Positions 39,228-57,362 of a stretch of DNA of 64,000 bases are shown one piece after another (position 1 is the first letter of the stretch; every line of letters starts with the position of its first letter). Position numbers and translations under genes: made by a program. The notes under the pieces were generated by a model. It was given only the letters and a program-made list of their open reading frames with translations. It was not told the origin of the DNA and did no database searches. The DNA lies in the sequence record NC_027399.1. One strand, written 5' to 3'.

Positions 39228-39257
39228 TGCGAATACAAATGATAATGATTCTCATTT
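39228..39257. promoter_or_regulatory. Extended Fur box
   Basis: TGCGAATACAAATGATAATGATTCTCATTT. Confidence 0.8.
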
Positions 39258-39345
39258 ACAGTACTGAATACTTTTTCCCACGCCCTGGCGTCTCCGGTTA
39301 CTCCCGTCTATATAAACATTATACAGTACTGAAATATTAAGTCAA
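39240..39345 (-). ncRNA. Gene-less promoter element, divergent member of the CCC..GGGTG family
   Basis: TTGACT-16-TATAAT on minus strand; GACGCCAGGGCGTGGG core; runs into Fur box. Confidence 0.5.
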
Positions 39346-39377
39346 TACTATTTTTCAAAAAGATTAAAATAAAATAC

Positions 39378-39484
39378 TTGCAATCATTGTATTATTATAT
39401 TATAATGTTTACAGTACTGAGAAAGTTCTTTTGCCCGCTAGGGTGCGGGGGAGTATGCGTTAAATGAGAATGATAATCATTTAC
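39378..39484 (+). ncRNA. Gene-less promoter element (CCC..GGGTG family) ending in Fur box
   Basis: TTGCAA-17-TATAAT; GCCCGCTAGGGTGCGGGGGAGTAT; GAGAATGATAATCATTTAC (16/19 to Fur consensus). Confidence 0.6.
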
Positions 39485-39489
39485 AGTAC

Positions 39490-39584
39490 TGGACGGATTT
39501 TCCCACCCTCGGGGGTCTCTTTTTGTCTATGTAGTAATTATACAGTACTGGAATACTATATCAAGTCTCTTTACAAATCTTTAC
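39490..39584 (-). ncRNA. Gene-less promoter element convergent on the same Fur box
   Basis: CpxR-type box 39570..39584, TTGATA-16-TATAAT, CCCCCGAGGGTGGGA. Confidence 0.55.
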
Positions 39585-39678
39585 AATTCACCCGGGTAGA
39601 TTTATCTTTACTGTAAAAGTACTTGCATAATTCTTTCAGTACTGCTATTATATATTCATACCAAACAGGAGAACTACC

Positions 39679-39831
39679 ATGAAATACGCGTACTCTTATT
39701 TTATTGTAAACGGTGAACGTTTGACCATCGGCCAGGCTGCTGTAAAACATGAAATCATTTGCGATGATCTGGCAAAGATGCTACCAGGTGAAACGCAAGA
39801 GTTTTACAAAGGCTTCAGAAAGTCATTGTAA
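39679..39831 (+). CDS. Small early hypothetical protein (not in track)
   Basis: Own promoter, AGGAG SD. Confidence 0.7.
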   Translation: MKYAYSYFIVNGERLTIGQAAVKHEIICDDLAKMLPGETQEFYKGFRKSL

Positions 39832-39913
39832 CACGTTGTGAAGATTGATCCAGTATTAGGGGTAGGAATACCCCTAAAACGTCCTATAACGCATTATAAG
39901 AGGTTTTTATAAT

Positions 39914-40141
39914 ATGGCTATAGAAGTTAACGCTGGGGATATAAAGGCGGCTGTACTGCGTACCCTGAAAGCATACGGCAGAAAGCTGAATGATCGAAAC
40001 GTTCCCTATTATTTCCTTGCTGCTACTCATAAAATGGCAATCGCTGAGGCTCGCGGGTGGCTGAATGATCGCAGTACTGTAAAGAGTACCAGAACAAGAA
40101 ACGCAATTGAGCGATGGATAAAAGAATTAAATCATTTCTAA
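39914..40141 (+). CDS. Hypothetical protein
   Basis: GAGG SD, host-like codons. Confidence 0.75.
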   Translation: MAIEVNAGDIKAAVLRTLKAYGRKLNDRNVPYYFLAATHKMAIAEARGWLNDRSTVKSTRTRNAIERWIKELNHF

Positions 40142-40214
40142 TAGTTCAGTAAAGGGAATCAGTACTGATTCCCTGTTTAGTACTGAAATTATAAGGGGAG
40201 TTAATTAATTCCCC

Positions 40215-40345
40215 TTTACAAATCTTTACAAAAGAATTGTTGACATAGTATCCCAGTACTGGTATTATGTATTCATAGACAGAACAAGTCTTTGGCCCAC
40301 AGGGTGCGGAGGAGTATCTATTAAATGAGAATGATAATCATTTAC
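40215..40345 (+). ncRNA. Gene-less promoter element (CCC..GGGTG family) ending in Fur box
   Basis: CpxR-type box 40215..40229; TTGACA-17-TATTAT; AGAC-AGAACAA-GTCT hairpin; GCCCACAGGGTGCGGAGGAGTATCTAT; Fur box 40327..40345. Confidence 0.65.
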
Positions 40346-40349
40346 AGTA

Positions 40350-40452
40350 CTGAATATATTTCCGCACCCTTTTGGGCTTTTCGATTCCTCTCTACTTGCT
40401 AATAAGTATATCATAATCATTACTGAATGCAATGGTCTTTACAAATCTTTAC
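40350..40452 (-). ncRNA. Convergent gene-less promoter element
   Basis: CpxR-type box 40438..40452; TTGCAT-16-TATACT; GCCCAAAAGGGTGCGGA. Confidence 0.55.
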
Positions 40453-40549
40453 AAAAGAAAATAATTATAAAAAGTACTGAAAAAGTACTTGACGTAATAA
40501 TGTAGTACTGGCATAATGAGTACATACCAAACAGAACGGAGTAACTAAA

Positions 40550-40837
40550 ATGTTTAATGAAAATGATCATATTGTTAAAGAGTTTTCTTTCAGTAAGCCG
40601 ATCCATTTAGAAAACGGTGAAACACTGGACAATAAATTTTATGGTAGTATTATTAAGCGTTATACATCGCGGAGTAGTACTGGAATTTTATGGGAAGTGA
40701 ATAAACAGTACAATGGTAATTCGCTGGTTGTCAATGAGTGGGAAAGTTATGCAGTAGCGGAAATGGATTTTTCTAACTTCATTACTGAATCTTTGAACGA
40801 TGATATCTTTTACAAGTTCACAGCGGAAAGGGTTTAA
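40550..40837 (+). CDS. Early hypothetical protein
   Basis: Promoter plus GGAG SD. Confidence 0.8.
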   Translation: MFNENDHIVKEFSFSKPIHLENGETLDNKFYGSIIKRYTSRSSTGILWEVNKQYNGNSLVVNEWESYAVAEMDFSNFITESLNDDIFYKFTAERV

Positions 40838-40956
40838 AAAGTTTTAAAGAGTACTTGACAACATAATTCAGTACTGTATAATGTATTGCATAGAAAGGAG
40901 ATTCCAGAATAATGGAATCTCCGATAAAACAAACTATCAGTGAAGGAGTAATTGCC

Positions 40957-41568
40957 ATGAATGTTATCGATACCATCTATTCTAAATCTTTTATCGAACT
41001 GAATGAAGAGCAGAAAGAAAAAGCAATCGATGTTATGCGGGAACTGGATCGCCATGATTCAGATCCATTCTGGGCACAATTAATTAATGAAGATAAACAA
41101 GAATTAATGAATAATGAATATGGTTTTACTGATGCTGTAATTCATTATAGCGGCTTTTGCTCACAAGGTGACGGGGCGTCAATTAGTACTGAATCAATCG
41201 ACGCTGAGACGTTTTTACGCAAAATTAAAGCATGGTCGAAATTCCGTGTATTGCATAAACATTTCAATGATGGTACTATTACATTAAAGATCGAACGCAA
41301 CGATCATCGTTATTCGCATGAAAATACTGTTTCTGGTGTGGTGGATTTGGATTATTATACTGAATTCACTGCTAAACAAGAAGAGAAAGCGGAAGAGCTG
41401 GAGACGCTTTTGACTGAAACTATCCGTGATCTTTCACGTCAACATTACCAGGAGTTAAGCGACGAAAACGATTATCAAAATAGTGATGAAGCATTGATTG
41501 AATCGATTAATGCAAATGATTATAATTTCAAAGTTAACAGTACTGGTAACGTATTGGGGTTAGCGTAA
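40957..41568 (+). CDS. Early hypothetical protein
   Basis: AAGGAG SD; YSGFCSQGDGASI motif. Confidence 0.85.
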   Translation: MNVIDTIYSKSFIELNEEQKEKAIDVMRELDRHDSDPFWAQLINEDKQELMNNEYGFTDAVIHYSGFCSQGDGASISTESIDAETFLRKIKAWSKFRVLHKHFNDGTITLKIERNDHRYSHENTVSGVVDLDYYTEFTAKQEEKAEELETLLTETIRDLSRQHYQELSDENDYQNSDEALIESINANDYNFKVNSTGNVLGLA

Positions 41569-41666
41569 TGACTAAATTATATATTCGTTTCTGTTTTGCC
41601 TGGTATTTGTATAATCTACAAAATGGTTATACAACGAAATAATATATCTTTTTACTGATATACTGT

Positions 41667-41698
41667 AAAACGTCCTGTAAACGATTATGGGACGTTTT
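41667..41698. repeat. 32-bp imperfect palindrome, copy at 49893..49924
   Basis: AAAACGTCCTGTAA(A/T)CGATTATGGGACGTTTT; relatives at 39876, 41734, 44918, 54579. Confidence 0.8.
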
Positions 41699-41769
41699 AA
41701 GGAATATTAGTACAATGTTAGTACTGAATGATTTAAACGCCTTACAGTGGCTTACAGGAGATTATATCA

Positions 41770-41982
41770 ATGGCTAAATGTACTATTTGTAATAAAGAAA
41801 TTATTCTTTCCCCTAGTGCAGAGGATCGAGCTAAAAAGTACGGTGGTAAAGCCAGCGACTACACGAAACTTTTTACTACTCATGCGTCTTGTGTTGTTAA
41901 TAAACGTTCAAATGTCAACATTGAATTAATGCGTAAAATCAATAATGATTTTATTAATTCCTGTAAAAAAGTACTTGCATAA
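41770..41982 (+). CDS. Small Zn-binding hypothetical protein
   Basis: CTIC...H..C; AGGAG SD. Confidence 0.8.
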   Translation: MAKCTICNKEIILSPSAEDRAKKYGGKASDYTKLFTTHASCVVNKRSNVNIELMRKINNDFINSCKKVLA

Positions 41983-42061
41983 AGTTTTCAGTACTGGCAT
42001 AATACATCTATACCAAACAAAAAGGGAATCAGTACTGATTCCAAGATAAGGAGTAACTGAA

Positions 42062-42376
42062 ATGAGTACTAAAGAACTGAATGTAACTACCAACACTTAT
42101 AAGACGTTATGCGGTCGGTTGTTACGTGATTATTACACTGTAGAGATTGAAGAACGCGAATTACCCGAAGATAAACACTATTGGGAAAGTGGTGTGAGTC
42201 CTCTGTTACGGGTAACAACGTCTAAGCATGTTTTCTTTACTTCTCGCATTCATGTTAATAAGCGTGTCGAATTGACTTTCTCGTTTAGTGGAAGCTATAA
42301 AGATTATGAGATATTAAATGATCATATCGTTATCAGCAAATTTATTCAAATGTATGGTGCGGATTCTTTACTTTAA
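42062..42376 (+). CDS. Early hypothetical protein
   Basis: Promoter-stem-loop-AAGGAG cassette. Confidence 0.8.
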   Translation: MSTKELNVTTNTYKTLCGRLLRDYYTVEIEERELPEDKHYWESGVSPLLRVTTSKHVFFTSRIHVNKRVELTFSFSGSYKDYEILNDHIVISKFIQMYGADSLL

Positions 42377-42462
42377 GTATTTGACAATTCGATCCAGTAC
42401 TGTATAATGTATTACACCAAAGGGGATACATAGTGTATCCCTGATATAAAGGAGTAGCGACT

Positions 42463-42822
42463 ATGCGAGCTTTTAACGTTTATAAGAATGACAAAAAAAT
42501 TGACGTTGTTTATTATTCCGAAGTAATGACGGCAAAAGAAGTAACCGATTTGCTGAATAGCCGTGGTGAATACAACGGCGAAGTAAAAGCATTTCGGTCA
42601 TTGAATAGTGCGAATATTCGCACAGTACTGAAAAATGCTAAAACTGTTTTATTCAATGATGACGAATATTTTAATAAAGATGTTACGGGTATTAAAAACC
42701 TGGAAGATCTGAAAAGCCTTATTGGTATTAAAGGCAACGTATACAAAGTGGGGGAAGTCGGATCTCGCCATGAATATAAATTAGCCAATAGTGATTATAA
42801 ATTTTCAATCCTGGTAATGTAA
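42463..42822 (+). CDS. Early hypothetical protein
   Basis: Promoter-stem-loop-AAGGAG cassette. Confidence 0.8.
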   Translation: MRAFNVYKNDKKIDVVYYSEVMTAKEVTDLLNSRGEYNGEVKAFRSLNSANIRTVLKNAKTVLFNDDEYFNKDVTGIKNLEDLKSLIGIKGNVYKVGEVGSRHEYKLANSDYKFSILVM

Positions 42823-42823
42823 T

Positions 42824-43027
42824 ATGAAAGTTTATATTTTGGAAGTGGAAGAATGTAATTCATATTCTTACAGTGGTACACTATCACGCGTGGAGGCTGT
42901 ATTTGCAAGCGAGCAAGAAGCCCACGCCGCCGGGATTCAAAAAGTAAAAGAAGGCTATGAAGGTTATAGCGTCGATGCTTATGATATTCAGGGCGATCTT
43001 TCAGTACTGTTAAAGGAATTAAAATAA
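42824..43027 (+). CDS. Early hypothetical protein
   Basis: Coupled to upstream gene. Confidence 0.75.
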   Translation: MKVYILEVEECNSYSYSGTLSRVEAVFASEQEAHAAGIQKVKEGYEGYSVDAYDIQGDLSVLLKELK

Positions 43028-43242
43028 TGGAATATGAATTAATATATCACACTCGGTTATATGTTATTTTCTTTGAAATAACGTTATGGGGAGTAAAGGC
43101 AACGATTTATAATAAAGACGTTGCCGACGATCAAGAATGGATCGTTGTTGCAGAAGATAAAACGCCTCATGATTCGTTAAGTACTGATTTTAAATTATGC
43201 CGTGAATTATTAAAGAGAATAAGAAAAGATAATAATATATAA
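43027..43242 (+). CDS. Early hypothetical protein
   Basis: AAGGA SD, TAATG coupling. Confidence 0.75.
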   Translation: MEYELIYHTRLYVIFFEITLWGVKATIYNKDVADDQEWIVVAEDKTPHDSLSTDFKLCRELLKRIRKDNNI

Positions 43243-43245
43243 AAC

Positions 43246-43272
43246 AAAGGGGATCAATCGATCCCCTTTTTG
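43246..43272. terminator. Bidirectional intrinsic terminator
   Basis: AAAGGGGATC-AATC-GATCCCCTTTT. Confidence 0.85.
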
Positions 43273-43289
43273 TTTCAGTACTGAATTAA

Positions 43290-43400
43290 TAATAGATACA
43301 CTACGGCACCCTATGGGTCAGTGCCTTGTGTCCGGCTTATGTGGTTATTATGCCAGTACTGCGAACATAAGTCAATAGATGATTTGTAAAGAAGTGTAAA
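43290..43400 (-). ncRNA. Gene-less promoter element (CCC..GGGTG family)
   Basis: GTAAA-N5-GTAAA 43386..43400; TTGACT-17-CATAAT; GCC-GGACACAA-GGC; GACCCATAGGGTGCCGTAGTGTATCTAT. Confidence 0.65.
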
Positions 43401-43567
43401 TGCACAGGAAGCGTTTTAAGGCGTTAATCTGTTGCTGGTGGCTGATAGTACAGAGAAGTGTTTTAGATTGATTGTAGGCCGTTGTAGGCGTTTATAGATA
43501 GTAAAGTACTGATAATGTTTAATGATCCTGGTATGTGCAAATTATTTTAATTTTTTTCGTATTGGGT

Positions 43568-43950
43568 ATTGACGGATTATGTCAGTACTGGCATAATGTA
43601 TCACATAGAGCGACGGGCAAGACAAGTAGTCAACCTGTAAGACATACGAAAACCAGGTGACGTTGCACTGATTCAGTACTGAATAATACATAACATCTAA
43701 ATGTTGACAGTACTGAAAAATGTAGTATAATGATTCACAGAAAGAAGCAATCCAGTAAGCATGGATTAGTGATAAACGTAGGCCGGAATCACGAAAAACT
43801 TTCAAGGAAATACCCTTGTATAAAAAGGGAAGCGTTAAGCGTAGAACGTAAACGCGAAAATCCTAGCCTTGAACTGAAAAAGTAAACAAGGCAATTACAG
43901 AAAAAAGATTTAAAAAAGTAGTTGACAAGTACTAACGAGAATGAGATAAT
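43568..43950 (+). promoter_or_regulatory. Tandem strong promoters upstream of the H-NS-like gene
   Basis: TTGACG/CATAAT, TTGCAC/AATAAT, TTGACA/TATAAT, TTGACA/GATAAT, each containing AGTACT. Confidence 0.7.
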
Positions 43951-44003
43951 CTCTCTCGTTGAAACAAACAAACAATCTTAATCAAAACTTAAAGGTGAAT
44001 AAA

Positions 44004-44504
44004 ATGGCTAAACTGAATTCTGTTGTTGTTGCTCTGATCGCTGGTGATATCGCTGCTCTGAATGCTTCTTTCGCGTCGGTATCGATGGAAGATATGAAAA
44101 CTGTTCGTAACAACTTTAACGATTTTTACTCTAAATTCAAAGCTGCAAATGAAGCGGCGGAAGCGGCTGCAAAAGAGCGTAAAGCACAGATCGAAACCGA
44201 AACGAAAGAACTGGTAGACGCCCTGGTAACTGCTGGCCTGGATCTGGAAATGGCCGCCGAAGTCGCCAGCCAGAAAATGGCGGTGAAATATCCCGAACTG
44301 GCTCCGAAGTCGGGAACTGGTAAAACCTGGTCGTTTGAAACCGTATTCGTTAACGTTGACGGTGAAAAACTGGAAATTGGCACCAAAGGCAACAAAGGCA
44401 GTATGAAAGCACTGGCGGCGGCACGCGAAGCAATTGCCGCTGGCAAATACAAAGATCGTGCTGAATGGATCGCCGCTCACGCCTGGACTGAAACCGAAGC
44501 GTAA
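44004..44504 (+). CDS. H-NS/MvaT-like nucleoid-associated protein (putative)
   Basis: Ala/Glu-rich coiled coil ending ALVTAGLD (H-NS MLIADGID); KY...GTGKTWS (H-NS KY...GETKTWTG); GEKLEIGTKGN (MvaT GEVIETKGGN); highly expressed codon bias; AAGGTG SD. Confidence 0.55.
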   Translation: MAKLNSVVVALIAGDIAALNASFASVSMEDMKTVRNNFNDFYSKFKAANEAAEAAAKERKAQIETETKELVDALVTAGLDLEMAAEVASQKMAVKYPELAPKSGTGKTWSFETVFVNVDGEKLEIGTKGNKGSMKALAAAREAIAAGKYKDRAEWIAAHAWTETEA

Positions 44505-44525
44505 TAATTCAGTACTGTAATAATT

Positions 44526-44550
44526 AGCCTCCTGTAATTAGGAGGCTTTT
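44526..44550 (+). terminator. Intrinsic terminator
   Basis: AGCCTCCT-GTAATT-AGGAGGCT-TTT. Confidence 0.85.
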
Positions 44551-44583
44551 TATTTTGTTCAAAAAAATATTTTAATTTATTTT

Positions 44584-44740
44584 TTGAACGGACTTAAAAA
44601 ATCGGATATAATAATAAAGGGTGTTAATTACAGAGACCCCCATAGTGTTCGCTACGCTCACATAATGATCTTACTCGTTGCACTCGTAAGATCATTATCC
44701 AATCGGCCTTCGGCGATTTCTTTTTGATTTCCTACGGAAA
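44584..44740. other. Promoter followed by cluster of GNA-triloop hairpins
   Basis: TTGAAC-17-TATAAT; 13-bp perfect stem ATAATGATCTTAC/GTAAGATCATTAT; minus-strand GCGTAGC, GCCGAAGGC, TCCGTAGGA. Confidence 0.6.
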
Positions 44741-45111
44741 CCAAACGAAACCACCAGCAAAGGCAGATCCCATTATTTGATTTAGTTAGTACTGCAATGA
44801 ATTAGTTTAATCGCACTACAAAGCAATCAATCCCTTTTGTAATAGCTCATAGAACGCAATAAGACGCGTTTAAATGACTTCCCTATGTAATGCCATTCCT
44901 TTTTAATAAGTCCTCTTAAAACGCGTTACAGTTCGTTATACGGCGTTTAATAATACTCATCATTTCTTTTTCAAAAAGTACTTGCATTAATGATCCAGTA
45001 CTGCAATAATGTACTCACTGAAACGCAGTAAGTAAATGCAAATAAGTACTTGACAAAGTGTTGTAGTACTGGCATAATGAATACATCAAAACGATTAAGG
45101 AGAAACACCAA

Positions 45112-45585
45112 ATGTTAAAACTTCATAAAGTACTTGATAACGCAGTTGTAACCGACTTTTTCCTGTCTCTTAACAACGAACCTAAAACAGCAAAAGAAAT
45201 TGTTTTGAGTGGTTACATTGCCAGCAAGTCAGAGATCGCACATTTGGAAAGTGCTTTCAAGTCCGGCGATGCATTGTACCGAAAAATGCAAAATACCATC
45301 GAAGATTTGCAATATATCAATTTACGTGATATTGTAGACAATAAATTGGATATTTCAGAAGAAGCACGCGAAAACCTGGTAAGTAAATTATGTTACCGCT
45401 GCCGAACTGCAAAATGGAATCGCATTCGTAGTATTATTACTTACGATTTAAGTAAGATCGATTCTAAATCAATTCTTGAACGTATGTTATTAAATTTGCA
45501 AAGCAATGAATGGTTTTATACTGCTGCCCAATCTCATAGCGAAGAAATTGCATATATTCGTGATTATGTAATTTACAGCAAGTAA
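45112..45585 (+). CDS. Early hypothetical protein
   Basis: Two tandem promoters, AAGGAG SD. Confidence 0.85.
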   Translation: MLKLHKVLDNAVVTDFFLSLNNEPKTAKEIVLSGYIASKSEIAHLESAFKSGDALYRKMQNTIEDLQYINLRDIVDNKLDISEEARENLVSKLCYRCRTAKWNRIRSIITYDLSKIDSKSILERMLLNLQSNEWFYTAAQSHSEEIAYIRDYVIYSK

Positions 45586-45658
45586 TTAATAATTGATTAG
45601 CCATCATTAAAGCTGGTGGCTAATAGAATATTAATAACCTGTTAGGAGAATAATCTTT

Positions 45659-45928
45659 ATGAAAGGTATTAGTACTTTAATTGATAAAAACACTCATGTA
45701 AGACGTTCAATGATTGCCGTATCACTGGCTAAAGTTGTTGCAAGTGGTTATCTGGTTTTTGTTGTAGATGGTAAATTGCAAGAGCGTTCAATTGCATTTA
45801 GTACTAAAGAAAATTGCCGTTATATTGTATACAAGAAAGAAGCATACAAGATAGATTTACCAGCGAAACCGATCTCAGGCGGTTACAATGTTGAAAGCCT
45901 TTATGAAAGGCCACCGTATACTGCGTAG
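45659..45928 (+). CDS. Early hypothetical protein
   Basis: AGGAG SD. Confidence 0.75.
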   Translation: MKGISTLIDKNTHVRRSMIAVSLAKVVASGYLVFVVDGKLQERSIAFSTKENCRYIVYKKEAYKIDLPAKPISGGYNVESLYERPPYTA

Positions 45929-46182
45929 AATCGATTTTGAGCGGCTTTAATGAAATATAGGGTATCAGTACTGATACCCGTTTAAAACAGTGTAGGAGTG
46001 ATTCTGTGAAGCGTGAACAAGCTTTATTGACGCCTGAAGAGGCAAGACGCTATGAAATGTTTTCAAACCAGGAAACGATCAAAGCGGCACAATATAACCC
46101 GGTTGCTTGTACAGTACAAAGAAAGAATTTTGTACTAAATGAAGTAGAAAGTATTATCAAATCAAATAAGGAGTAAAACGCT

Positions 46183-46455
46183 ATGCAAAATAACCGTCCA
46201 ATGATCCGCAACATGCTTTTCGTATTCCAGAAAAAAGTTAATGTAACTTCGGTAAATGGTGAACGTAAATTAAATGCAGCTTTCGCCAAATATACCCAAA
46301 GTAAAAACATCCATTACTTTTATCTTACTCTGAATGAGTTTAATGATCTGGTAAAAGAAATGTTTGTCAGTACTGAAATTGTTGCACCTGTAAGCACTGA
46401 TATCATTCTAAAAGAATGGGAAAGTTTTTACAAAAGTTCTGTTGTAATCGCTTGA
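46183..46455 (+). CDS. Early hypothetical protein
   Basis: AAGGAG SD. Confidence 0.8.
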   Translation: MQNNRPMIRNMLFVFQKKVNVTSVNGERKLNAAFAKYTQSKNIHYFYLTLNEFNDLVKEMFVSTEIVAPVSTDIILKEWESFYKSSVVIA

Positions 46456-46509
46456 CAACATAATCCAGTACTGGCATAATAACTACATAGACCACAAAGG
46501 AGAAACATA

Positions 46510-46689
46510 ATGGAAACTGTAATTGCTACTACCAAAATCAATGGACTGGATAATGAAGTTTCATTGATCCATGACGGTAACGAATATGTTGTGTCATATG
46601 GTATCTATAAAACCTATCATGACACTATCAATGAAGCTTTTGAGGATTATATGAAAGCAATTGAAATTGCTTATGATGATTATCGTTAA
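46510..46689 (+). CDS. Small early protein (not in track)
   Basis: Promoter plus AAGGAG SD; METVIATTKING... Confidence 0.7.
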   Translation: METVIATTKINGLDNEVSLIHDGNEYVVSYGIYKTYHDTINEAFEDYMKAIEIAYDDYR

Positions 46690-46772
46690 AAGTACTTGCT
46701 TTAATCATTCAGTACTGTATAATGTATTACATCAAAGGGAATGAATGATTCATTCCCACATAACCAGGAGTA

Positions 46773-47132: not shown

Positions 47133-47246
47133 TTGACAAATCTTTACAAATCGGGGTTGACTTCGGTCGCCCCTTTTGTTATTATATATTCATACCACAG
47201 AGCAAGTGGTTTAGCCCACAGGGTGCCGAGATGTATCTATAGTTTA
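47133..47246 (+). ncRNA. Gene-less promoter element (CCC..GGGTG family)
   Basis: TTGACAAATCTTTAC; TTGACT-17-TATTAT; ACCAC-AGAGCAA-GTGGT; GCCCACAGGGTGCCGAGATGTATCTATAGTTTA. Confidence 0.7.
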
Positions 47247-47342
47247 ATAATTTGAAGTACTGAAAAATAATTATAAAAAGTACTTGTATTTGTGATTCAG
47301 TACTGCTATTATATATTCATACCAATTAAGGAGATTATCCAA

Positions 47343-47501: not shown

Positions 47502-47613
47502 TGATTGTAAAAGTATTGACAACGATAATTCAGTACTGTATCATAACTGGTGTAGCGTTCGTGTTAGCAGTTGCTATAGTGTTTAGTACTGTAATTGTAT
47601 TGGGGAATATATT

Positions 47614-48535: not shown

Positions 48536-48545
48536 TCTAATTTCA

Positions 48546-48658
48546 TTTACAAATCTTTACAAAACCAGTACTTGATTTAATTATTGAGTACTGGTATTAT
48601 ATATTCATTGGCAGATAAGCCGCAGCCCACAGGGTGGGGAAGTGTATCTATATGATTT
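48546..48658 (+). ncRNA. Gene-less promoter element (CCC..GGGTG family)
   Basis: CpxR-type box 48546..48560; TTGATT-17-TATTAT; GGC-AGATAA-GCC; GCCCACAGGGTGGGGAAGTGTATCTAT. Confidence 0.7.
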
Positions 48659-48984: not shown

Positions 48985-49070
48985 TTGACTTCGGTCGGCC
49001 CTTTTGCTATTATATATTCATTGGCAGATAAGCCGCAGCCCACAGGGTGCCGAGGTGTATCTATAGTTTA
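48985..49070 (+). ncRNA. Gene-less promoter element (CCC..GGGTG family)
   Basis: TTGACT-17-TATTAT; same 5' hairpin as 48.6 kb copy; GCCCACAGGGTGCCGAGGTGTATCTATAGTTTA. Confidence 0.7.
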
Positions 49071-49695: not shown

Positions 49696-49725
49696 AAAAA
49701 CACTGGCATATACAGGGGAATAAAA

Positions 49726-49881
49726 ATGATCATCGTACTATCAGAGAAAGAAAAGAAATTAGTTCTTTCAGTACTGAAAGAATATCCCAGAAATATGCGG
49801 GAGCCGTTTGAAACAAATAGTGAATTCGAAGAGCATTTAAACGATATCGATTTATTGATATCCAAGATCGAATCACAATAG
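49726..49881 (+). CDS. Small protein, MILS.EER family (not in track)
   Basis: AGGGG SD; MIIVLSEKEKKLVLSVL. Confidence 0.65.
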   Translation: MIIVLSEKEKKLVLSVLKEYPRNMREPFETNSEFEEHLNDIDLLISKIESQ

Positions 49882-50041
49882 TGATGTACTGTAAAACGTC
49901 CTGTAATCGATTATGGGACGTTTTAAGGAATAGCACTATGATTTATTCAGTACAGTGGAAAAAACGCTTGTAAATTGATTCCAGTACTGTATAATGCTTT
50001 ACATGGAAAAATTATTCTCCACATTATTAGGAATAAAGAAT

Positions 50042-50269
50042 ATGTTTTATCTTGGAACTGTTAAAGAAAATTCGAATGTAATTGAGGCGTCATTGATTTG
50101 TACTAATAATGAAGTCGCTGGCTATGATTTTGCAAAAGAGCGATTCATGAAATATTACACTGGTGATAATTCAGTGTCATTCGATTTTGAACGTATCGGT
50201 GATGGTGTTACAATTATGAAATTTGAAGATCTCCCTGAAATCGATTTTGATTTTGTCGTTACACTGTAA
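50042..50269 (+). CDS. Early hypothetical protein
   Basis: AGGA SD. Confidence 0.75.
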   Translation: MFYLGTVKENSNVIEASLICTNNEVAGYDFAKERFMKYYTGDNSVSFDFERIGDGVTIMKFEDLPEIDFDFVVTL

Positions 50270-50367
50270 AAAAGTACTTGCATAATTCTTTCAGTACTGT
50301 ATACTGTACTTATACCAAACAAAAGCAAATGGAATCAGTACTGATTCCCTGTAAAGGAGATAGACCA

Positions 50368-50619
50368 ATGTCAGATCGTATCACTCGCAAAATGGTAGCA
50401 GATAAAGTTGCTGGGCTGAATCTTGCTATTGACCGTCGTGGATTACCTGAAAAATATCAGGTAGTACTGGAAGATGGTAAATTCAATATTGAATTACAGC
50501 CGTCTCATGTTTATACTAATCCAAAAGTGATACAAAAGAATTTGAGTACACGAGAAGCATATTTTTATCTGAAAGGTATGTTTCAAATTCTTCTCGACAA
50601 TGTACCACATAAAGATTAA
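50368..50619 (+). CDS. Early hypothetical protein
   Basis: AAGGAG SD; MSDRITRKMV... Confidence 0.8.
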   Translation: MSDRITRKMVADKVAGLNLAIDRRGLPEKYQVVLEDGKFNIELQPSHVYTNPKVIQKNLSTREAYFYLKGMFQILLDNVPHKD

Positions 50620-50621
50620 AG

Positions 50622-50653
50622 AAAAAGGGGAGACAACAAGTCTCCCTTTTTTT
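50622..50653. terminator. Bidirectional intrinsic terminator
   Basis: AAAAAGGGGAGAC-AACAA-GTCTCCC-TTTTTTT. Confidence 0.85.
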
Positions 50654-50669
50654 GTATTCAGTACTAAAT

Positions 50670-50755
50670 TATATAGATACATTTATGCACCCTGTGGGTT
50701 AGTAGCTTGTTCTGCTTTATGTAGTAATTATATGATAAAGCTGGTGGCTTGTCAA
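50670..50755 (-). ncRNA. Gene-less promoter element (CCC..GGGTG family)
   Basis: TTGACA-17-TATAAT on minus; AGC-AGAACAA-GCT; AACCCACAGGGTGCATAAATGTATCTAT. Confidence 0.7.
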
Positions 50756-50848
50756 CACTTATTTTAAAATAAAAAAAATACTGAATAGTACTTGCAAAAA
50801 GTATTCAGTACTGTATAATGTTTGTATTGAGATTAAGGAGTACTTACT

Positions 50849-51388
50849 ATGTTAATCAAAATGTATCACGGTTCTAATAATTTTGATCACCGCCGGGGAT
50901 ATCTGGGCGGAAAGCCAGGTAATTTTCATATGGGCTTTGGACTCTATCTAACTAACTCTTATCGCTGGGCTGATAATTATGGGCGACGTCATTATGAGTT
51001 AGATTTAGATATTTGTAGTACTGGTGCCGCACATAATGTATGGATTCCTACTAAACACTTTATGGAATTCATAAGAGTATATTGCACCAAAAAGTTTTAT
51101 ACAATGTGCTGTAAAGAATTTAAAGACCGTGAATCGTTGAATGTAGAACGCGTTGAATTGCTTATTATCAATATGGAAAGGCACGTTACGAAAATCGCTA
51201 AACCATTTGCTGAATTCGTCGCTGCCTGGGGTTGCACGCATAGCATTGAAATATCCGGTAACTATGGTGGTGTTTGCGTGCGGCTTTATGATTTCAGTAC
51301 TATAAAGAATTGTATCATAAGCCAGGAAACGCAGGATTTTTATTATCCAGATGAATTGACAAGATATCCTCAAAAAAACTTGTATTAA
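50849..51388 (+). CDS. ADP-ribosyltransferase-fold protein (putative, H-Y class)
   Basis: MYHGS...GFGLYLT.S...A..YG signature. Confidence 0.55.
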   Translation: MLIKMYHGSNNFDHRRGYLGGKPGNFHMGFGLYLTNSYRWADNYGRRHYELDLDICSTGAAHNVWIPTKHFMEFIRVYCTKKFYTMCCKEFKDRESLNVERVELLIINMERHVTKIAKPFAEFVAAWGCTHSIEISGNYGGVCVRLYDFSTIKNCIISQETQDFYYPDELTRYPQKNLY

Positions 51389-51651
51389 TGATTCAGTACT
51401 GATATAATGTATTAAATTAACAGGAGGAATTATCTTAAATGAATAAACGTCAATTGATGATTGATGCATCTCGTTTCCGTTCAAAAGAAGAAAAGAAAAG
51501 TTGCATTAAATGGGTTTTGTCAACTTTCATTATTGGATTACTTATTGTTGCTTTTGTTTATAGTTAGTACTTGACAATATAATCCAGTACTGTATAATGT
51601 TTATCAAAGGGAATGAATTATTCATTCCCGATTAATCAAAGGAGTTTTGCC

Positions 51652-51876
51652 ATGATCTATATTATCAAAGTATCCCCGACCGTAGGAAAATCAGAAGTTG
51701 TAGCTGTTATCACTTCCCTGGAAGCGAAAGATCTTCATACCCCGTTTAATGTATGGGTGGAGGATAATTTCGGACAATTCAGTACTGCTGAATATATCGA
51801 ACAATTCGCCGTCCCGGATACTGGTAAAATCAAAGTGGATCGTATCCTGGATTTTGATAACAGTAATTACTTTTAA
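51652..51876 (+). CDS. Early hypothetical protein
   Basis: Promoter-stem-loop-AAGGAG. Confidence 0.75.
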   Translation: MIYIIKVSPTVGKSEVVAVITSLEAKDLHTPFNVWVEDNFGQFSTAEYIEQFAVPDTGKIKVDRILDFDNSNYF

Positions 51877-52174
51877 AAACGTTTGACAACTGATTTCAGT
51901 ACTGTATAATGTTTATCAAAGGGAATGAATTATTCATTCCCGATTAATCAAAGGGGTTTATCATGAAAGAGTATATCTTTGAAGTAACTTTCACCTTTGG
52001 CCCGCACCAACTGATCCGGTCTTCTGGCTACAACCGCGAACAAGCATTCAGCAACCTTCGCCGTATGTACCCCAATGTCGTGACCTGGGTCAAGTGTGAA
52101 GAAGCATAAAATAATTAGTCAGTACTATTGACAACGCGTGATAGTACTGCTATAATTATTTTAACTTATACGGA

Positions 52175-52426
52175 ATGGAGTTAAAACAAATGTTCAGTGT
52201 CAGCAAACAAGGCGACAAATTTCTGGTTCAATACCATCATTTTGATCTGGTATACACTCAGCCAGATTGTGTATTCAGTACTCAGGAAGGTGCTGAAAAG
52301 CACAAAAAAGCCTTGATCGAAAATAGCAACAGTGGTACATTAGATTTCATCCAACAGTACTGGAATGAATCTAAGCTGGTGGACGGTTATTCCAACACAG
52401 TTTATTATGTAGGTATCACTGATTAA
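52175..52426 (+). CDS. Early hypothetical protein
   Basis: Follows promoter; start may be ATG 52190. Confidence 0.75.
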   Translation: MELKQMFSVSKQGDKFLVQYHHFDLVYTQPDCVFSTQEGAEKHKKALIENSNSGTLDFIQQYWNESKLVDGYSNTVYYVGITD

Positions 52427-52713
52427 TCGGGAGTACTGTTAATGTATATGCCAATTATCATACCGTTAGCAGTACTGTTAATCGCCGCCGTTATCTGCGA
52501 ACAATATCATTTGTTAGGAATGTAAACTATGATTCAATGTGAATTGTCAGTACTGATCACGCTGTTCTATATGTTGGGGCAAAAGAAACAAGATATTTCT
52601 GGTGATAATGCATTATTGTATCAATCATTAGACCAATGGCAACGATCTGAATTAAGCAATGCATGGGCGAAAGGTTACAACGATAGTACTGCAAAATAAT
52701 TTAAAAAAAGGGG

Positions 52714-52801
52714 TTGACTTACGCCAGCCCTTTTGTTATCATTAGTACATAGCAAGAACAATGCTCAAGCCCACAGGGTGCCGAAGTGTATCTATAGTTT
52801 A
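52714..52801 (+). ncRNA. Gene-less promoter element (CCC..GGGTG family)
   Basis: TTGACT-17-TATCAT; AGCA-AGAACAA-TGCT; GCCCACAGGGTGCCGAAGTGTATCTATAGTTTA. Confidence 0.7.
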
Positions 52802-52886
52802 TGTTGGTCTGAATCATTAATTTTTCTTGACAATTGGTTTAGTACTGGATATAATAGCCGCCATTGAATACAGGAGGATTTTAAAA

Positions 52887-53153
52887 ATGGCCTATCATAC
52901 ACCACATAGACACTTCATTGATAAACGCGGTATGGCTTTTAAAGCAATGAGTGACAATCGTAACACACAAATGTACTTTAAAGATATGACATTAGAAGAA
53001 GCAATTGAAGCCGTAAGGAATGATCGTAAGCTTTCCAAGAAAGTTGCATCAGTACTTAATGCTTTTTGGTTTGAACGTACTACCAACAAAGAATACAAAG
53101 AAAAGATGATTGCACTTGGTAAAGTAGTAAGAGAAGAAAAATTATATCTTTAA
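52887..53153 (+). CDS. Early hypothetical protein
   Basis: AGGAGG SD. Confidence 0.8.
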   Translation: MAYHTPHRHFIDKRGMAFKAMSDNRNTQMYFKDMTLEEAIEAVRNDRKLSKKVASVLNAFWFERTTNKEYKEKMIALGKVVREEKLYL

Positions 53154-53435
53154 GTACTTGACTATGTGATTCAGTACTGTATACTGTACTTATACCAAAC
53201 AAAAGCAAAGGGAATCAGTACTGATTCCCTGTAAAGGAGATAGACCAAATGAAACAAGCAAAATTTAATTCAGAAATTAAAGCAGCAAAAGCACACAAAG
53301 TACAGTTAGCAGTACTGGCTATCGTATCAATCTTTTTGCTGTGCAACATCGGCTAAAATAATTATCACAGTACTATTGACAACCAACGATAGTACTGGTA
53401 TAATTAGTTTACCAAATCAAAAAGGAGTAACTAAA

Positions 53436-53711
53436 ATGCGGATTAAACTTACCAGTGATGAAATTCATTCAGTACTTACTACCAATATGCAGGACTGGAA
53501 AAAGTACGCTGATATCGAAGAAGTCCAGGAACTCAATGATGATTTGAGTGTAGATGAAATTATTACTATTTGCTCATCTCAATTCTTTGATGATATCAAT
53601 GATGAAGAGCAAGATGTATTTGATATCATGGAAAAACATTTTATTGCGTATGATGTTTTCCCGTATACTCGCCAGGCTTATATTCTTATTCACAACATTT
53701 ATAACAAATAA
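53436..53711 (+). CDS. Acidic early hypothetical protein
   Basis: AAGGAG SD. Confidence 0.8.
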   Translation: MRIKLTSDEIHSVLTTNMQDWKKYADIEEVQELNDDLSVDEIITICSSQFFDDINDEEQDVFDIMEKHFIAYDVFPYTRQAYILIHNIYNK

Positions 53712-53723
53712 GGAATAATAATC

Positions 53724-54089
53724 ATGGAAAAAGAATTTAAAATCAAATACAATATCAGTACTGATTGCGGTTTCGAAGTACCAGAAGAAGATCAAGAACG
53801 TCTTAATGATGTTATTATGATTGACATTTCAAATAAAATCATTCAAGGCTACCGTGAAGGCGAATTGTGTGAATCGTTGATGGATCAATTCAATGAAGTG
53901 GAAACGTTTTATCGTGGCTGGTGGAGTATCGAAGAAGTTCACAAAGTACACGAATACCGTGTATTCTGGATTAACGGCGTTAATGATATCGAAGATATCA
54001 TTGTAAAAGAAAGTAGTGAATCCGCCGCCATTCAGTACTTTAAAGATCACTACCCCAACAAACGTTATCACCATTTAGAAAAAATTTAA
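53724..54089 (+). CDS. Early hypothetical protein
   Basis: AAGGA SD. Confidence 0.8.
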   Translation: MEKEFKIKYNISTDCGFEVPEEDQERLNDVIMIDISNKIIQGYREGELCESLMDQFNEVETFYRGWWSIEEVHKVHEYRVFWINGVNDIEDIIVKESSESAAIQYFKDHYPNKRYHHLEKI

Positions 54090-54176
54090 AAAGTACTTGA
54101 CACCTAATACCAGTACTGATATATTAATACGCATAGGGGCAAACAACTTGCCCCACTAAACAAAAGGAACTACCAA

Positions 54177-54533
54177 ATGATTACTAAATTCTATTCTTCC
54201 CGCGAAAAAGCTCGGATCGTAGCACGTGAAGAAGGCGAAACCTTCAAAGATATGGGTAAAGATTCCCCTGCTGGTCAACGCTGGGCAGTACTGTTCCGCG
54301 AGGTCAAAGACCTGGTAGAAAACGCTAAAGCGGTTGAAATGAACGTACCCACCAAAGAAGATAAAGATCTGACTGATGCCCTCGCCGCTGCATTCTCCGC
54401 GATGGATAAAGCCGCAGCGGTAGTACTGAAAGTACCGGAATTTGTAACCCGCAAAGTGCATTCAGTACTGCAAAATAAATTCAACGGTAAACAGGTTCAA
54501 GTGTTTACTAAACGTAAAATTCCGGTCATGTAA
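54177..54533 (+). CDS. Highly expressed early hypothetical protein
   Basis: Cassette with AAGGA; strong host-like codon bias; YSSREKAR...GQRWAV. Confidence 0.85.
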   Translation: MITKFYSSREKARIVAREEGETFKDMGKDSPAGQRWAVLFREVKDLVENAKAVEMNVPTKEDKDLTDALAAAFSAMDKAAAVVLKVPEFVTRKVHSVLQNKFNGKQVQVFTKRKIPVM

Positions 54534-54641
54534 GACCTGATTATTACAGTACTAACAAAGGGGCTTCAAAGCCCCTTTAAACGTCCTGTAAGCCATTCTA
54601 AGAGGTTTTACATGAAAAAGGTACAACTACACAAAGGAGTA

Positions 54642-54860
54642 ATGAAAGTTCATTATAATGCCCCGCAACGCATTATAGATAGAGCCATTGAACTAGCCAA
54701 TCAATATCTAGCTGGTGGATTAACTCCCAGGAAGTTAAGCAACGGGAAGTTATATGTAATCAACGTTGATACTAATAATCGTATAGTAATCAAAGGTGAA
54801 AGCATATCACTGTATGAACATCAACAGTATAACAAGAAAGTAAAAAATATTAGTAGATAA
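54642..54860 (+). CDS. Small basic protein, possibly RelE/ParE-like fold
   Basis: AAGGAG SD; RKL...I.V..NNRIV...HQQYN pattern. Confidence 0.45.
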   Translation: MKVHYNAPQRIIDRAIELANQYLAGGLTPRKLSNGKLYVINVDTNNRIVIKGESISLYEHQQYNKKVKNISR

Positions 54861-54939
54861 GTGTTGACAACTGATTTCAGTACTACCATAATGTATACAT
54901 ACAAGGCAATACCGCCTAATAACATAGGAGTAACTGAAA

Positions 54940-55362
54940 ATGAAAAAATCAACTAAAATTGTCTTAGGTGTATTTGTTGTTCCGGCAGTCGCCTTTTTTT
55001 CTTGTGCTATGATTTTTGGTGATGCTTCTCGGGTTGCCGCAAAAATCGAAAAAGAAAAACAAGTCCAGGAACAAGTTAAGAAAGAAGAAAAACCAAATTA
55101 TAACACTGTATGGGAAGCAATTTGCCATACCAGTACAGGTAAACGAATTTCCATCCTTACAGCAATGAATAATGGAAAATCAATCGTCGGAAACGAATAC
55201 ATGGAAGTGACTTCCAGTACTGGTAAAGAATTTGTAATGACGAACTATAATAACAATAACGTTGCAATTGTTACACAGGATTTTAAAGGTAATGCAGTAC
55301 TTGAATATCATATGCAATATGAAGTAATTTTTGCAAAATGCACATTTGAATGGGGTGCATAA
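54940..55362 (+). CDS. Membrane-anchored early hypothetical protein
   Basis: N-terminal hydrophobic helix; AGGAG SD. Confidence 0.8.
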   Translation: MKKSTKIVLGVFVVPAVAFFSCAMIFGDASRVAAKIEKEKQVQEQVKKEEKPNYNTVWEAICHTSTGKRISILTAMNNGKSIVGNEYMEVTSSTGKEFVMTNYNNNNVAIVTQDFKGNAVLEYHMQYEVIFAKCTFEWGA

Positions 55363-55389
55363 AAATAAACATAATAAACAAAAAAGGGG

Positions 55390-55472
55390 TTGACACAGGT
55401 CAGCCCTTTTGCTATTATTAATATCAAGAAAACAAGCTAACCCACAGGGTGCATAAATGTATCTATAGTTTA
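55390..55472 (+). ncRNA. Gene-less promoter element (CCC..GGGTG family)
   Basis: TTGACA-17-TATTAT; AACCCACAGGGTGCATAAATGTATCTATAGTTTA. Confidence 0.7.
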
Positions 55473-55543
55473 TTAAAGAATTTTAGTACTTGACAACGTA
55501 GTACAGCAGTACTAAAATATCTACATACAAAGGAGATTACCAA

Positions 55544-56128
55544 ATGAACAAACATCTTAAAGTACTGAATAAATGTAAATCCAATACCGAAATGTTACTG
55601 TACTGTTACAAAAATTTAATTAAACTCGGGAGAGGTTCATCAAGAACAGTATTTTTGTTAACAAAAAATAAAGTACTGAAAGTTGCTCATAACCATATTG
55701 GCAACCAACAGAATACAGCAGAAATCACTGCATGGTTGTATATTGATTATGACCGCTATTATAATAAACGCTTTTTCGCTAAAGTGTTCCCTGATATGTC
55801 ACATTTCAAAGATGTATACATAGTACAGGAGTACTGCGACAATATCAGTACTAAAGAAGCGAAGCCATACATCGAACATTACTTGACACCTCGCACTATT
55901 GAAAATGAGCGTGCTAAACGCTTCCACACGGCGTTAAGAGATGTAGACAATACCCTTAACTATAAAACGCTGGTGGACTTAAACATGGGCAATATAGGCC
56001 GTTCTGTAAGGGGTGCAATCAAAATCCGTGATTATGGATTATCTGAGCATATTGCTAAACAGTACCGAGAAGCCCGCTTCCAATACCAGCAACTCAAAAG
56101 TATTAGTAACATAAGTATTGATTTATAA
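55544..56128 (+). CDS. Ser/Thr protein kinase-like protein
   Basis: Gly loop LGRGSSRTV, VLKVA (Lys), NTAE (alphaC Glu), IVQEYC hinge, DLNMGN catalytic loop, DYG. Confidence 0.8.
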   Translation: MNKHLKVLNKCKSNTEMLLYCYKNLIKLGRGSSRTVFLLTKNKVLKVAHNHIGNQQNTAEITAWLYIDYDRYYNKRFFAKVFPDMSHFKDVYIVQEYCDNISTKEAKPYIEHYLTPRTIENERAKRFHTALRDVDNTLNYKTLVDLNMGNIGRSVRGAIKIRDYGLSEHIAKQYREARFQYQQLKSISNISIDL

Positions 56129-56193
56129 TTTCAGTACTGCTATAGTACTTTCACAGGGGAGATAATCTCCCCAATCACAGAGGAGATTTTACC

Positions 56194-56556
56194 ATGAGTA
56201 CTAAACCATTCGTTACTACCCGTTCAAATCTGACCGAAATCTATGTACACGGCGGATACGAGGAAACGTATGTCACTGGTATTATGGTAGAATTCCATCA
56301 GGGTTATCGGTTTATGTTGGTAGATTCAGAAATCTATCATACCCAACAAGATAAACATGGTTATGTCAATAAGTACTCCACCGATGAAGTACTGAAACGC
56401 CTGGATAACAAAATTAAACAAATTCAAAAACATCTTGACAACGGCGGAAAACTTAATCATTTACTTTGGGATAGCTTAGATCCCTGCTACGGTTCGGATG
56501 CATATGGTAAAAGCCGTGACACTGCAATGAAAGTACTTAAAGATTATTTCTTTTAA
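56194..56556 (+). CDS. Early hypothetical protein
   Basis: GAGGAG SD. Confidence 0.8.
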   Translation: MSTKPFVTTRSNLTEIYVHGGYEETYVTGIMVEFHQGYRFMLVDSEIYHTQQDKHGYVNKYSTDEVLKRLDNKIKQIQKHLDNGGKLNHLLWDSLDPCYGSDAYGKSRDTAMKVLKDYFF

Positions 56557-56630
56557 GTATTGACAAGCAATTCCAGTACTGGCATAATGTATTTCAAGGA
56601 GGTAATAACACCTCCTACCTTCAAGGAGTA

Positions 56631-56879
56631 GTGACTATGAATACTAAAGAAATGCTTTGTGAGTTCGCCAGTAACAATCTTGGTAACGCCGCTTTCATTG
56701 ATGGTTTTAATTATGTAGCAACTCGTGATCAAGAAGGTAAAGTATTCGTTAAAGATCGTATGGGCTTTTCTATCCAGGTTCAATCTGGTACTGCAAGCCA
56801 TATNGATNGTNNGAANGNNTGGNNNNGNTNCTATCCCCGGNGATGGAACATATCATTTCCGTATCGTAAAATAATTTAA
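56631..56879 (+). CDS. Early hypothetical protein (3' end unreliable, many Ns)
   Basis: AAGGAG SD. Confidence 0.6.
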   Translation: MTMNTKEMLCEFASNNLGNAAFIDGFNYVATRDQEGKVFVKDRMGFSIQVQSGTASHXDXXXXWXXXYPRXWNISFPYRKII

Positions 56880-56973
56880 AAAGTNCTGGACAATACAATC
56901 CAGTACTGTATAATGTTTTGCATACACAAGAGATTCCAGTNCTGGAATCTNTAATNTAAAGGAGAATACCAAA

Positions 56974-57255
56974 ATGATTAACGGCACTCTGATTAANTAT
57001 GCAAAACGCCGCGATGTAGAAATAGAAGTACTGAAAGCAGGCGAAGTTGACGATGACGCTCAGGTATGGTTCTACACCGCAGACAATGACTGTGAACCAG
57101 TACTGATGTACCTGATTAATAATGATGGTTCTCTTACTTATCGTAGCAAACTGATGAAGTCACTGGAAGATATGCCAGCACATATCAATAATAAAGAAGT
57201 ACTGAAACGCGTAATCTGCTACATCTCAGACCAGCACAAAGCGGATATGATGTAA
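56974..57255 (+). CDS. Early hypothetical protein
   Basis: AAGGAG SD. Confidence 0.8.
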   Translation: MINGTLIXYAKRRDVEIEVLKAGEVDDDAQVWFYTADNDCEPVLMYLINNDGSLTYRSKLMKSLEDMPAHINNKEVLKRVICYISDQHKADMM

Positions 57256-57274
57256 TCTTTACAAATATGGGGGG

Positions 57275-57362
57275 TTGACTAATGTCAGCCCTTTTGGTAT
57301 TATATATTCAATCCAGCGAAATGGTCTAACCCTCAAGGGTGCCGAGATGTATCTATAATTTA
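57275..57362 (+). ncRNA. Gene-less promoter element (CCC..GGGTG family)
   Basis: CTTTACAAAT upstream; TTGACT-17-TATTAT; AACCCTCAAGGGTGCCGAGATGTATCTATAATTTA. Confidence 0.7.

Follow-up and report, generated by a model that had tools for sequence, protein, structure and literature searches.

A conserved, multicopy, promoter-coupled element selected for intrastrand pairing in the terminal repeat of Klebsiella phage K64-1 and related jumbo phages

Results

Promoter-driven, gene-less units in K64-1

We analyzed a 64,000-nucleotide stretch of sequence record NC_027399.1 (hereafter, the window), which derives from the 346.6-kb genome of Klebsiella phage K64-1 (Alcyoneusvirus) and in which a position equals the record position minus 186000. 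An earlier note, made from the letters alone, had listed 13 copies of an element at 39.3–57.3 kb, each described as a promoter followed by a variable 5' hairpin and a constant core, CCC-N3/4-GGGTG, and all assigned to an "early island" of the genome. All 13 copies exist, and a 14th core, which lacks a promoter, was found outside the listed range; the K64-1 family consists of 13 promoter-driven, gene-less units and this promoter-less core, confined to about 20 kb of the genome (Table 1). The element is approximately 55 nucleotides (nt) long and is placed after a near-consensus host promoter.

The core is strongly concentrated in this region. CCC-N3-GGGTG occurs 10 times in the window, where 0.18 occurrences are expected; allowing a loop of three or four bases yields 14 window sites, all at 38.2–57.3 kb, and 14 of the 15 such sites in the entire K64-1 genome lie inside one 19-kb stretch. 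Similarly, the downstream TGTATCTAT box has eight exact copies in the window, all at 43.3–57.4 kb, and a copy with one mismatch at 40313. Anchored alignments reproduce the promoter-hairpin-core-box architecture. Searched against the complete K64-1 genome, a covariance model (R1) built from the copies of related phages identifies nine full copies, each of them inside the terminal repeat described below. Four copies are partial (39.3(-), 39.4(+), 39.5(-) and 40.4(-) kb) and, as had been noticed, hold only the promoter and the core. The recurring hairpin loops that had been reported (AGAACAA three times, AGAGCAA, AGATAA twice, and GGACACAA) are present, and the 57.3-kb copy has the loop GCGAAA. 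The 55.4-kb copy has no hairpin, and the 39.3(-) core has CGC/GCG in place of CCC/GGG.

Neighboring copies are spaced 0.07–4 kb apart, each with a separate promoter, and Tandem Repeats Finder (TRF) detects no tandem array of the element. A segment comprising a unit and the next promoter is present twice (47139-47322 and 57254-57403), each version being about 86% identical to the same segments of the close relative Muenster; this arrangement shows that the family grows by local duplication.

The repeat_region of Muenster (1-20030) is predicted by PhageTerm to be a direct terminal repeat (DTR). Since the K64-1 region that aligns to it by BLAST encloses the whole family, the "early island" corresponds to the terminal repeat, that is, to DNA present at both virion ends, and all copies do lie within it. 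Terminal repeats of approximately 20 kb have been physically confirmed in the RaK2-like phage group (PMC13070987) and in CBB (PMC5259590).

Promoters and predicted start of transcription

Consistent with the near-consensus sigma70 promoters that had been claimed, all 13 listed copies lie downstream of promoters that match the consensus at 10–12 of 12 positions. When relatives are included, 80 of 91 copies have at least 10 matches, mostly with a 17-bp spacer, a score that shuffled sequences seldom reach. The -10 hexamer mostly ends 5 nt upstream of model position 1, and model position 2 is an A in 98% of copies. Transcription is predicted to start at the conserved A seven bases past the -10 hexamer, 1–2 nt ahead of the 5' hairpin (H1).

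In five composite terminator-promoters (47150-47185, 48564-48595, 52707-52734, 55383-55410 and 57268-57303), the -35 hexamer lies inside a G+C hairpin stem and the T tail of the hairpin runs to the -10 hexamer, so that the end of the upstream operon coincides with the start of the next unit.

Distribution among jumbo phages

BLAST detects the unit in 62 phage records, and it is shared by all RaK2-like jumbo phages examined, whose hosts are Klebsiella, Escherichia, Salmonella, Cronobacter, Pectobacterium/Erwinia and Yersinia. Applied to related jumbo phages, R1 identified 100 copies, 80 of them distinct, with matches in RaK2, Muenster, 121Q-type coliphages, GAP32, CBB, Munch, fENko-Kae01, fHe-Yen9-03 and Erwinia-type contigs; the covariance search that the earlier note had proposed thus shows that the family is conserved in relatives. 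Each relative has 8–12 copies, which always cluster in about 20 kb of sequence; where the record annotates a repeat, they fall inside it.

No match to Rfam 15 (4227 models) was obtained in the whole window at the gathering threshold, and at E<=5 the 15 weak matches to positions 38.0–58.7 kb include none that recurs on the copies; no tRNA or tmRNA was detected in the sequence examined. A search of 185,579 bacterial and archaeal genomes returned no instance of the exact core-plus-box pattern, and the element is therefore not host-derived. A scan of IMG/VR with a loose 14-base pattern returned mostly chance matches and was not used. Within the literature searched, no paper on the RaK2-like phage group contains the motif strings, and work on CBB reports "RpoD-like promoters with UP elements" and does not mention a downstream element. 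The RNA family is undescribed, as the earlier note had suspected; as a kind, phage early non-coding RNAs and leaders have precedents.

Covariation supports two hairpins, with a possible alternative helix

Selection on a folded strand, which had been suggested on the basis of the K64-1 stems, was borne out by covariation in H1 and in the hairpin formed by the core (H2). H1 is paired in 94% of cells, with double-sided changes at all four of its pairs and about 16 different stems, and these pairs are the top four in an all-column scan for mutual information. Independently of any alignment, a hairpin of at least 4 bp is found at the fixed position in 25 of 51 segments, compared to 5.2 +/- 2.1 in shuffled sequences. 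The H1 loop is purine-rich and ends in AA, the two residues being conserved at 98% and 87%. H2 is a 4-bp G+C hairpin in which the three C residues are conserved at 100, 100 and 94% and the three G residues at 97, 100 and 100%. Among bona fide copies its stem has compensated variants (CCU/AGG twice, and CGC/GCG), its outer pair switches between A-U and G-U, and its loop has 3 or 4 nt. RNAalifold recovers the same H1 and H2. A pseudoknot or other long-range pairing was considered and rejected, the all-column scan having returned the H1 pairs only.

Furthermore, the invariant GGGUGC, which comprises the 3' arm of H2 (GGGU) plus GC, can pair with the downstream TGTATCTAT-type box to form an alternative helix, H3 (93% of cells paired). 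At least five of six H3 pairs are kept by nearly all of the 30 distinct sequence combinations (a count of sequences, not of independent events), compared to about 5% expected by chance. Substitutions exchange U and C opposite G, and A and G opposite U, contrary to the A+T bias of the genome, and the rare changes on the 5' side are likewise compatible with pairing. H2 and H3 are mutually exclusive and have nearly equal median energies (-4.0 and -4.4 kcal/mol), which suggests, on statistical and in part one-sided evidence, that the module is a two-state RNA. H3 was rejected as an intrinsic terminator: it contains just two G-C pairs, lacks a clean U tract and is not called by the terminator scan.

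The unpaired positions are near-invariant in phages of six host genera. Thus, the element is conserved, multicopy, promoter-coupled and selected for intrastrand pairing, and it very probably represents a functional structured RNA family.

Two other readings bear on this point. The core and box might be bound as DNA, in early-promoter shut-off, as a roadblock, or in a function of the terminal repeat or genome ends, including the staged DNA entry that the earlier note had raised. The strict limitation of the family to the terminal repeat would fit such a site, as would the Fur-box-like sites adjoining partial copies, a protein with an H-NS N-terminal domain encoded in the repeat, and the position of the promoter-less core, which by alignment lies 19–29 nt from the mapped left physical end of Muenster. 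However, a tie between core and repeat boundaries was rejected, as the core is found neither at the right boundary nor at the ends mapped in five other phages. H1 covaries with free choice of sequence and H2 is compensated, which indicates pairing within a strand and not duplex recognition; the H2 loop has 3 or 4 nt with no compensation elsewhere, the alternation of G-U and A-U suits RNA, and the orientation to the promoter is always fixed. We therefore regard a DNA-level site as highly unlikely.

Covariation also makes an origin primer less likely. The earlier note had proposed G-rich R-loop primers, and promoter-driven RNA could form a persistent R-loop in A+T-rich DNA, as at oriF and oriG of T4. 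A strong promoter does precede a G-containing RNA segment, with A+T-rich DNA beyond, and K64-1 carries T4-like replication genes. Yet the conserved self-pairing of the RNA would compete with a persistent RNA-DNA hybrid, the G-richness is modest, the 8–14 copies lie in both orientations, including face-to-face, and terminators follow 40 nt downstream. This explanation seems barely plausible.

Stand-alone, gene-proximal and convergent copies

The copies occur in three genomic contexts. In the first, a strong intrinsic terminator lies about 21 nt past the model (21 of 91 copies), giving predicted RNAs of about 100–105 nt; the K64-1 copies at 43.3(-) and 50.7(-) kb, both on the minus strand, belong to this group, and the earlier observation that two antisense copies face bidirectional terminators was confirmed. 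These 21 copies possess their own promoter and their own terminator without an open reading frame (ORF), as small RNA (sRNA) genes do; the copies that precede a promoter and gene do not. In the second context, sense copies are followed within 40–110 nt by a second consensus promoter, a Shine–Dalgarno (SD) sequence and a gene, consistent with the claim that the next gene has its own promoter, and several of these copies have promoters whose -35 hexamer falls within a terminator-like hairpin belonging to the preceding operon. In the third, two units form a gene-less convergent pair, an arrangement found in every relative examined. The proposal of a multicopy family with host-type early promoters, often standing alone up to a terminator, thus holds.

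Fur-box-like sites accompany some of these arrangements. Using the published consensus (PMC4506495), we found four sites with 16 of 19 matches, where 0.12 are expected, all in the leftmost 2.2 kb of the repeat, and two of the four lie between convergent units. Such sites separate convergent pairs in the Klebsiella, Salmonella and Erwinia relatives and do not in those of E. coli and Yersinia or in CBB.

The statement that no copy has an SD sequence or ORF held in part: neither is conserved family-wide, but the spacer is purine-rich and SD-like, and a three-codon start-Tyr-Leu-stop is present in five of nine full K64-1 copies. A micro-ORF was rejected as the conserved entity: the presumed start codon has its G in 67% of copies, length changes in the loop alter the reading frame, and fewer than half of the copies have a stop at codon 4. 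Tiny hypothetical ORFs annotated in RefSeq overlie units or promoters (40265-40432(-), 47133-47255(+) and many ORFs of 20–55 amino acids at 38–58 kb); because the copies show RNA covariation and frame-breaking indels, these are probably over-calls.

Table 1. Features of the K64-1 terminal repeat (window coordinates)
Feature	Position	Strand	Remarks
Region aligning to Muenster DTR	38181-~58573		BLAST alignment; encloses whole RNA family
Orphan core	38198-38210	-	14th core; H2 motif only, without usual-distance promoter, H1 or 3' box
Fur-box-like site	38949-38967		16/19; first 2.2 kb of terminal repeat
Fur-box-like site	39241-39259	-	16/19; first 2.2 kb of terminal repeat
Partial unit	39259-39345	-	Promoter 11/12; variant core with compensated stem CGC/GCG; continues into Fur-box-like site
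Partial unit	39378-39465	+	Left half of convergent pair 1; promoter and core with 4-nt loop
Fur-box-like site	39466-39484	+	16/19; between halves of convergent pair 1
Partial unit	39484-39564	-	Right half of convergent pair 1; promoter 11/12 and core, no hairpin
Full unit	40240-40326	+	Left half of convergent pair 2; promoter 11/12, H1, H2, one-mismatch 3' box
Fur-box-like site	40327-40345	+	16/19; between halves of convergent pair 2
Partial unit	40345-40432 (approximate)	-	Right half of convergent pair 2; weaker promoter and core with 4-nt loop
Stand-alone unit	43238-43375	-	Promoter, H1, H2, 3' box; bidirectional terminator 43246-43269; predicted RNA ~105 nt
Full unit	47157-47245	+	-35 in terminator-like hairpin stem; then second promoter and gene
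Full unit	48572-48656	+	Then second promoter and gene
Full unit	48985-49069	+	Then second promoter and gene
Stand-alone unit	50618-50755	-	Promoter 12/12, H1, H2, 3' box; terminator 50628-50646; predicted RNA ~105 nt
Full unit	52714-52800	+	Promoter within terminator-like hairpin 52707-52734; then 12/12 second promoter and gene
Short-form unit without H1	55390-55471	+	Promoter within hairpin 55383-55410; then second promoter and protein-kinase gene
Full unit	57275-57361	+	H2 with 4-nt loop; inside 57254-57403, duplicate of 47139-47322
CTTTACAAA sites	39208, 39569, 40214-40232, 40437-40455, 43383(-), 47142, 48555, 57257		

Possible signals acting in cis

The contexts bear on two readings in which the element acts on the transcript that carries it. 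In the first, H1 would shield early RNAs from 5'-dependent decay, and the box would be a cleavage or binding site that sets mRNA lifetime. The start of H1 only 1–2 nt from the predicted 5' end suits such a role, as does the A/U-rich single-stranded tract downstream of the 3' box. However, this leaves the near-invariant H2 core, the stand-alone terminated units and the convergent pairs unexplained; moreover, mRNAs from the second promoters lack the element, and about a quarter of copies dispense with H1. A stability module is distinctly unlikely.

In the second, nascent hairpins and a pause would load a factor onto RNA polymerase or modify it, as in put/nut antitermination or ops-type recruitment, and so alter the reach of early transcription. 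The put sites of phage HK022 are two-stem antitermination RNAs of about 50–70 nt that directly follow the phage early promoters, contain no ORF and act in cis; each genome has two, both in sense and preceding operons that contain terminators. Compared by description, the K64-1-type module likewise has two stems directly after early promoters, at a fixed place relative to +1, and about half of its copies lie in sense upstream of genes; unlike put, it is present in 8–14 copies, many of which face a terminator with no gene or face each other. In lambda, the nut sites near the early promoters combine boxA with boxB, a hairpin whose stem is free in sequence and whose loop is purine-rich and conserved. 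H1, with its four covarying pairs and conserved purine-rich loop beside a conserved linear sequence, resembles boxB, although the order and content of the module differ from nut, some copies are minus-strand or convergent, and no match to the N family was obtained. Among 21 scanned proteins of the terminal repeat (Pfam was run on 20 and PHROGs on 10 of these), no N-, Q- or NusG-like protein was detected.

A likeness to transcriptional pause elements was also noted. The 12-base ops element has GG at positions 1–2 and TG at positions 11–12, an arrangement reported to match the consensus pause (PMC5995543), and in the leader region of the module an invariant GG and a conserved TG (T in 93%, G in 67% of copies) lie 8 nt apart on the non-template strand. 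RfaH-dependent ops was rejected, as no copy matches it with three or fewer mismatches and the central bases that RfaH requires are absent. With ops itself lacking, the pause TG lost in a third of copies, 4 of 13 K64-1 copies and 21 of 91 in total facing only a terminator with no gene beyond, antisense to early genes, convergent pairs that would collide, and a consensus promoter of its own for every downstream gene, we consider a cis-acting co-transcriptional signal, the strongest of the rival readings, unlikely.

A proposed trans-acting, protein-binding RNA

Discussion

Our preferred interpretation, to which we assign a probability of roughly 40%, is that the element is an abundant protein-binding RNA module that acts mainly in trans. 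It is based on the stand-alone units and gene-less convergent units, on copy number and promoter strength, and on how little the unpaired and loop positions vary among phages that infect different hosts. We infer that the units are transcribed immediately by the host polymerase and act as RNA. Each copy would be a small immediate-early unit that is read by unmodified host sigma70 polymerase once the terminal repeat is inside the cell. The first base transcribed would be the conserved A, and the first 55 nt or so would fold into H1 and H2; the 3' arm of H2 could alternatively pair with the TGTATCTAT-type box, giving two nearly isoenergetic states. The module would then be released as a terminated RNA of about 100 nt or form the 5' portion of a longer early RNA, and the large amounts produced from 8–14 paralogous genes could sequester or recruit a conserved host or phage factor in trans.

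Several observations weigh against this interpretation. About half of the copies are followed by a second promoter and gene, with no canonical terminator in between, and one copy, in an Erwinia-type contig, continues directly into an SD sequence and ATG, so that the earlier statement that the units are not leaders was too strong; a cis role is compatible with these gene-proximal copies. The 38.2-kb orphan core lacks a promoter at the spacing seen in the units. H1 is missing from about 20 of 80 copies, the variation in H3 is mostly one-sided, and the transcript ends are predictions. Moreover, no RNA-binding domain was detected in 21 terminal-repeat proteins (20 scanned with Pfam and 10 with PHROGs), and the complement of the box shows no enrichment and no target in the phage genome.

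Trans-acting and protein-sponge RNAs are familiar in enterobacteria (Hfq-type sRNAs, CsrB and 6S). The stand-alone copies resemble these in having their own promoter, a length of about 100 nt, a U-tailed terminator and a conserved unpaired tract, and in the high abundance to be expected; unlike them, the module is encoded by phages, in multiple paralogous copies that all lie in a terminal repeat, and it has neither the GGA-loop repeats of CsrB nor the promoter-mimic fold of 6S. Small structured phage RNAs have also been proposed as mimics of host RNAs, namely RNA anti-CRISPRs or solitary repeat units, and ToxI-type antitoxins, and the earlier note had offered both kinds of mimic as functions. 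A CRISPR-repeat mimic was not upheld, as no Rfam family matches any copy at E<=5 in that database, which we take to contain CRISPR-DR models. ToxI-like antitoxins consist of tandem direct repeats of about 34–36 nt beside a toxin gene; the copies described here are dispersed and not tandem, have their own promoters and show no pattern of an adjacent toxin gene, which speaks against a type III antitoxin mimic. In PA5oct, a distantly related Pseudomonas jumbo phage, RNA-seq detected abundant ncRNA001 and ncRNA002 in the terminal repeat (PMC7318152); unlike the module, these are 236 and 451 nt long and single-copy, with no similarity to the model, and homology to them was rejected. By analogy, they nevertheless show that the terminal repeat of a jumbo phage can yield abundant non-coding RNA.

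A more far-reaching reading is that the family constitutes a new class of takeover RNA, a two-state RNA from 8–14 genes on the first-entering DNA that titrates or co-transcriptionally recruits an Enterobacterales-wide factor, with the Fur-box convergent pairs coupling its output, or the local formation of double-stranded RNA, to host iron status. We think this unlikely as a whole.

RaK2-like jumbo phages are widely isolated on Klebsiella, E. coli and Salmonella, and their early program is almost wholly unannotated. Given conservation across at least six host genera, 8–14 copies, near-consensus promoters and restriction to the terminal repeat, the module is probably one of the most plentiful early products of these phages. 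A description of the family would correct tiny-ORF annotations and add a family to RNA databases, and a 55-nt RNA with a testable two-state fold offers a handle on how these phages begin infection; if its partner is a host factor, an RNA-based takeover strategy would be shown.

Other features of the terminal repeat

The only domains identified in the terminal-repeat proteins scanned were an H-NS N-terminal domain (E=4e-6), a ParE-like toxin domain (E=2.4e-10), a weak protein-kinase match and domains of unknown function; the H-NS, ParE-like and weak kinase-match proteins are encoded at 44004-44504, 54612-54860 and 55544-56128, respectively. A search for related loci using the kinase gene returned RaK2 alone.

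Directly outside the left boundary, at 38090-38168, TRF finds about five tandem 10-bp repeats, which could be a packaging or end-formation signal.

The hexamer AGTACT, often in CAGTACTG or AGTACTGAA, occurs 940 times in the K64-1 genome, compared to about 118 expected, with a density of up to 71 per 10 kb inside the terminal repeat. The hexamer is found at the upstream border of many -35 boxes, just ahead of many -10 boxes, and also past genes, and is probably a genome-wide regulatory or protein-binding motif. The deposited sequence has two ambiguous bases (N), at about 56894 and 56941, within AGNACT-type motifs. A second motif, CTTTACAAA (inside TCTTTACAAA), lies just upstream of -35 boxes, often as a pair 10 bp apart; 10 of its 11 window copies are within the terminal repeat, and it may be an UP-element-like or factor-binding site.

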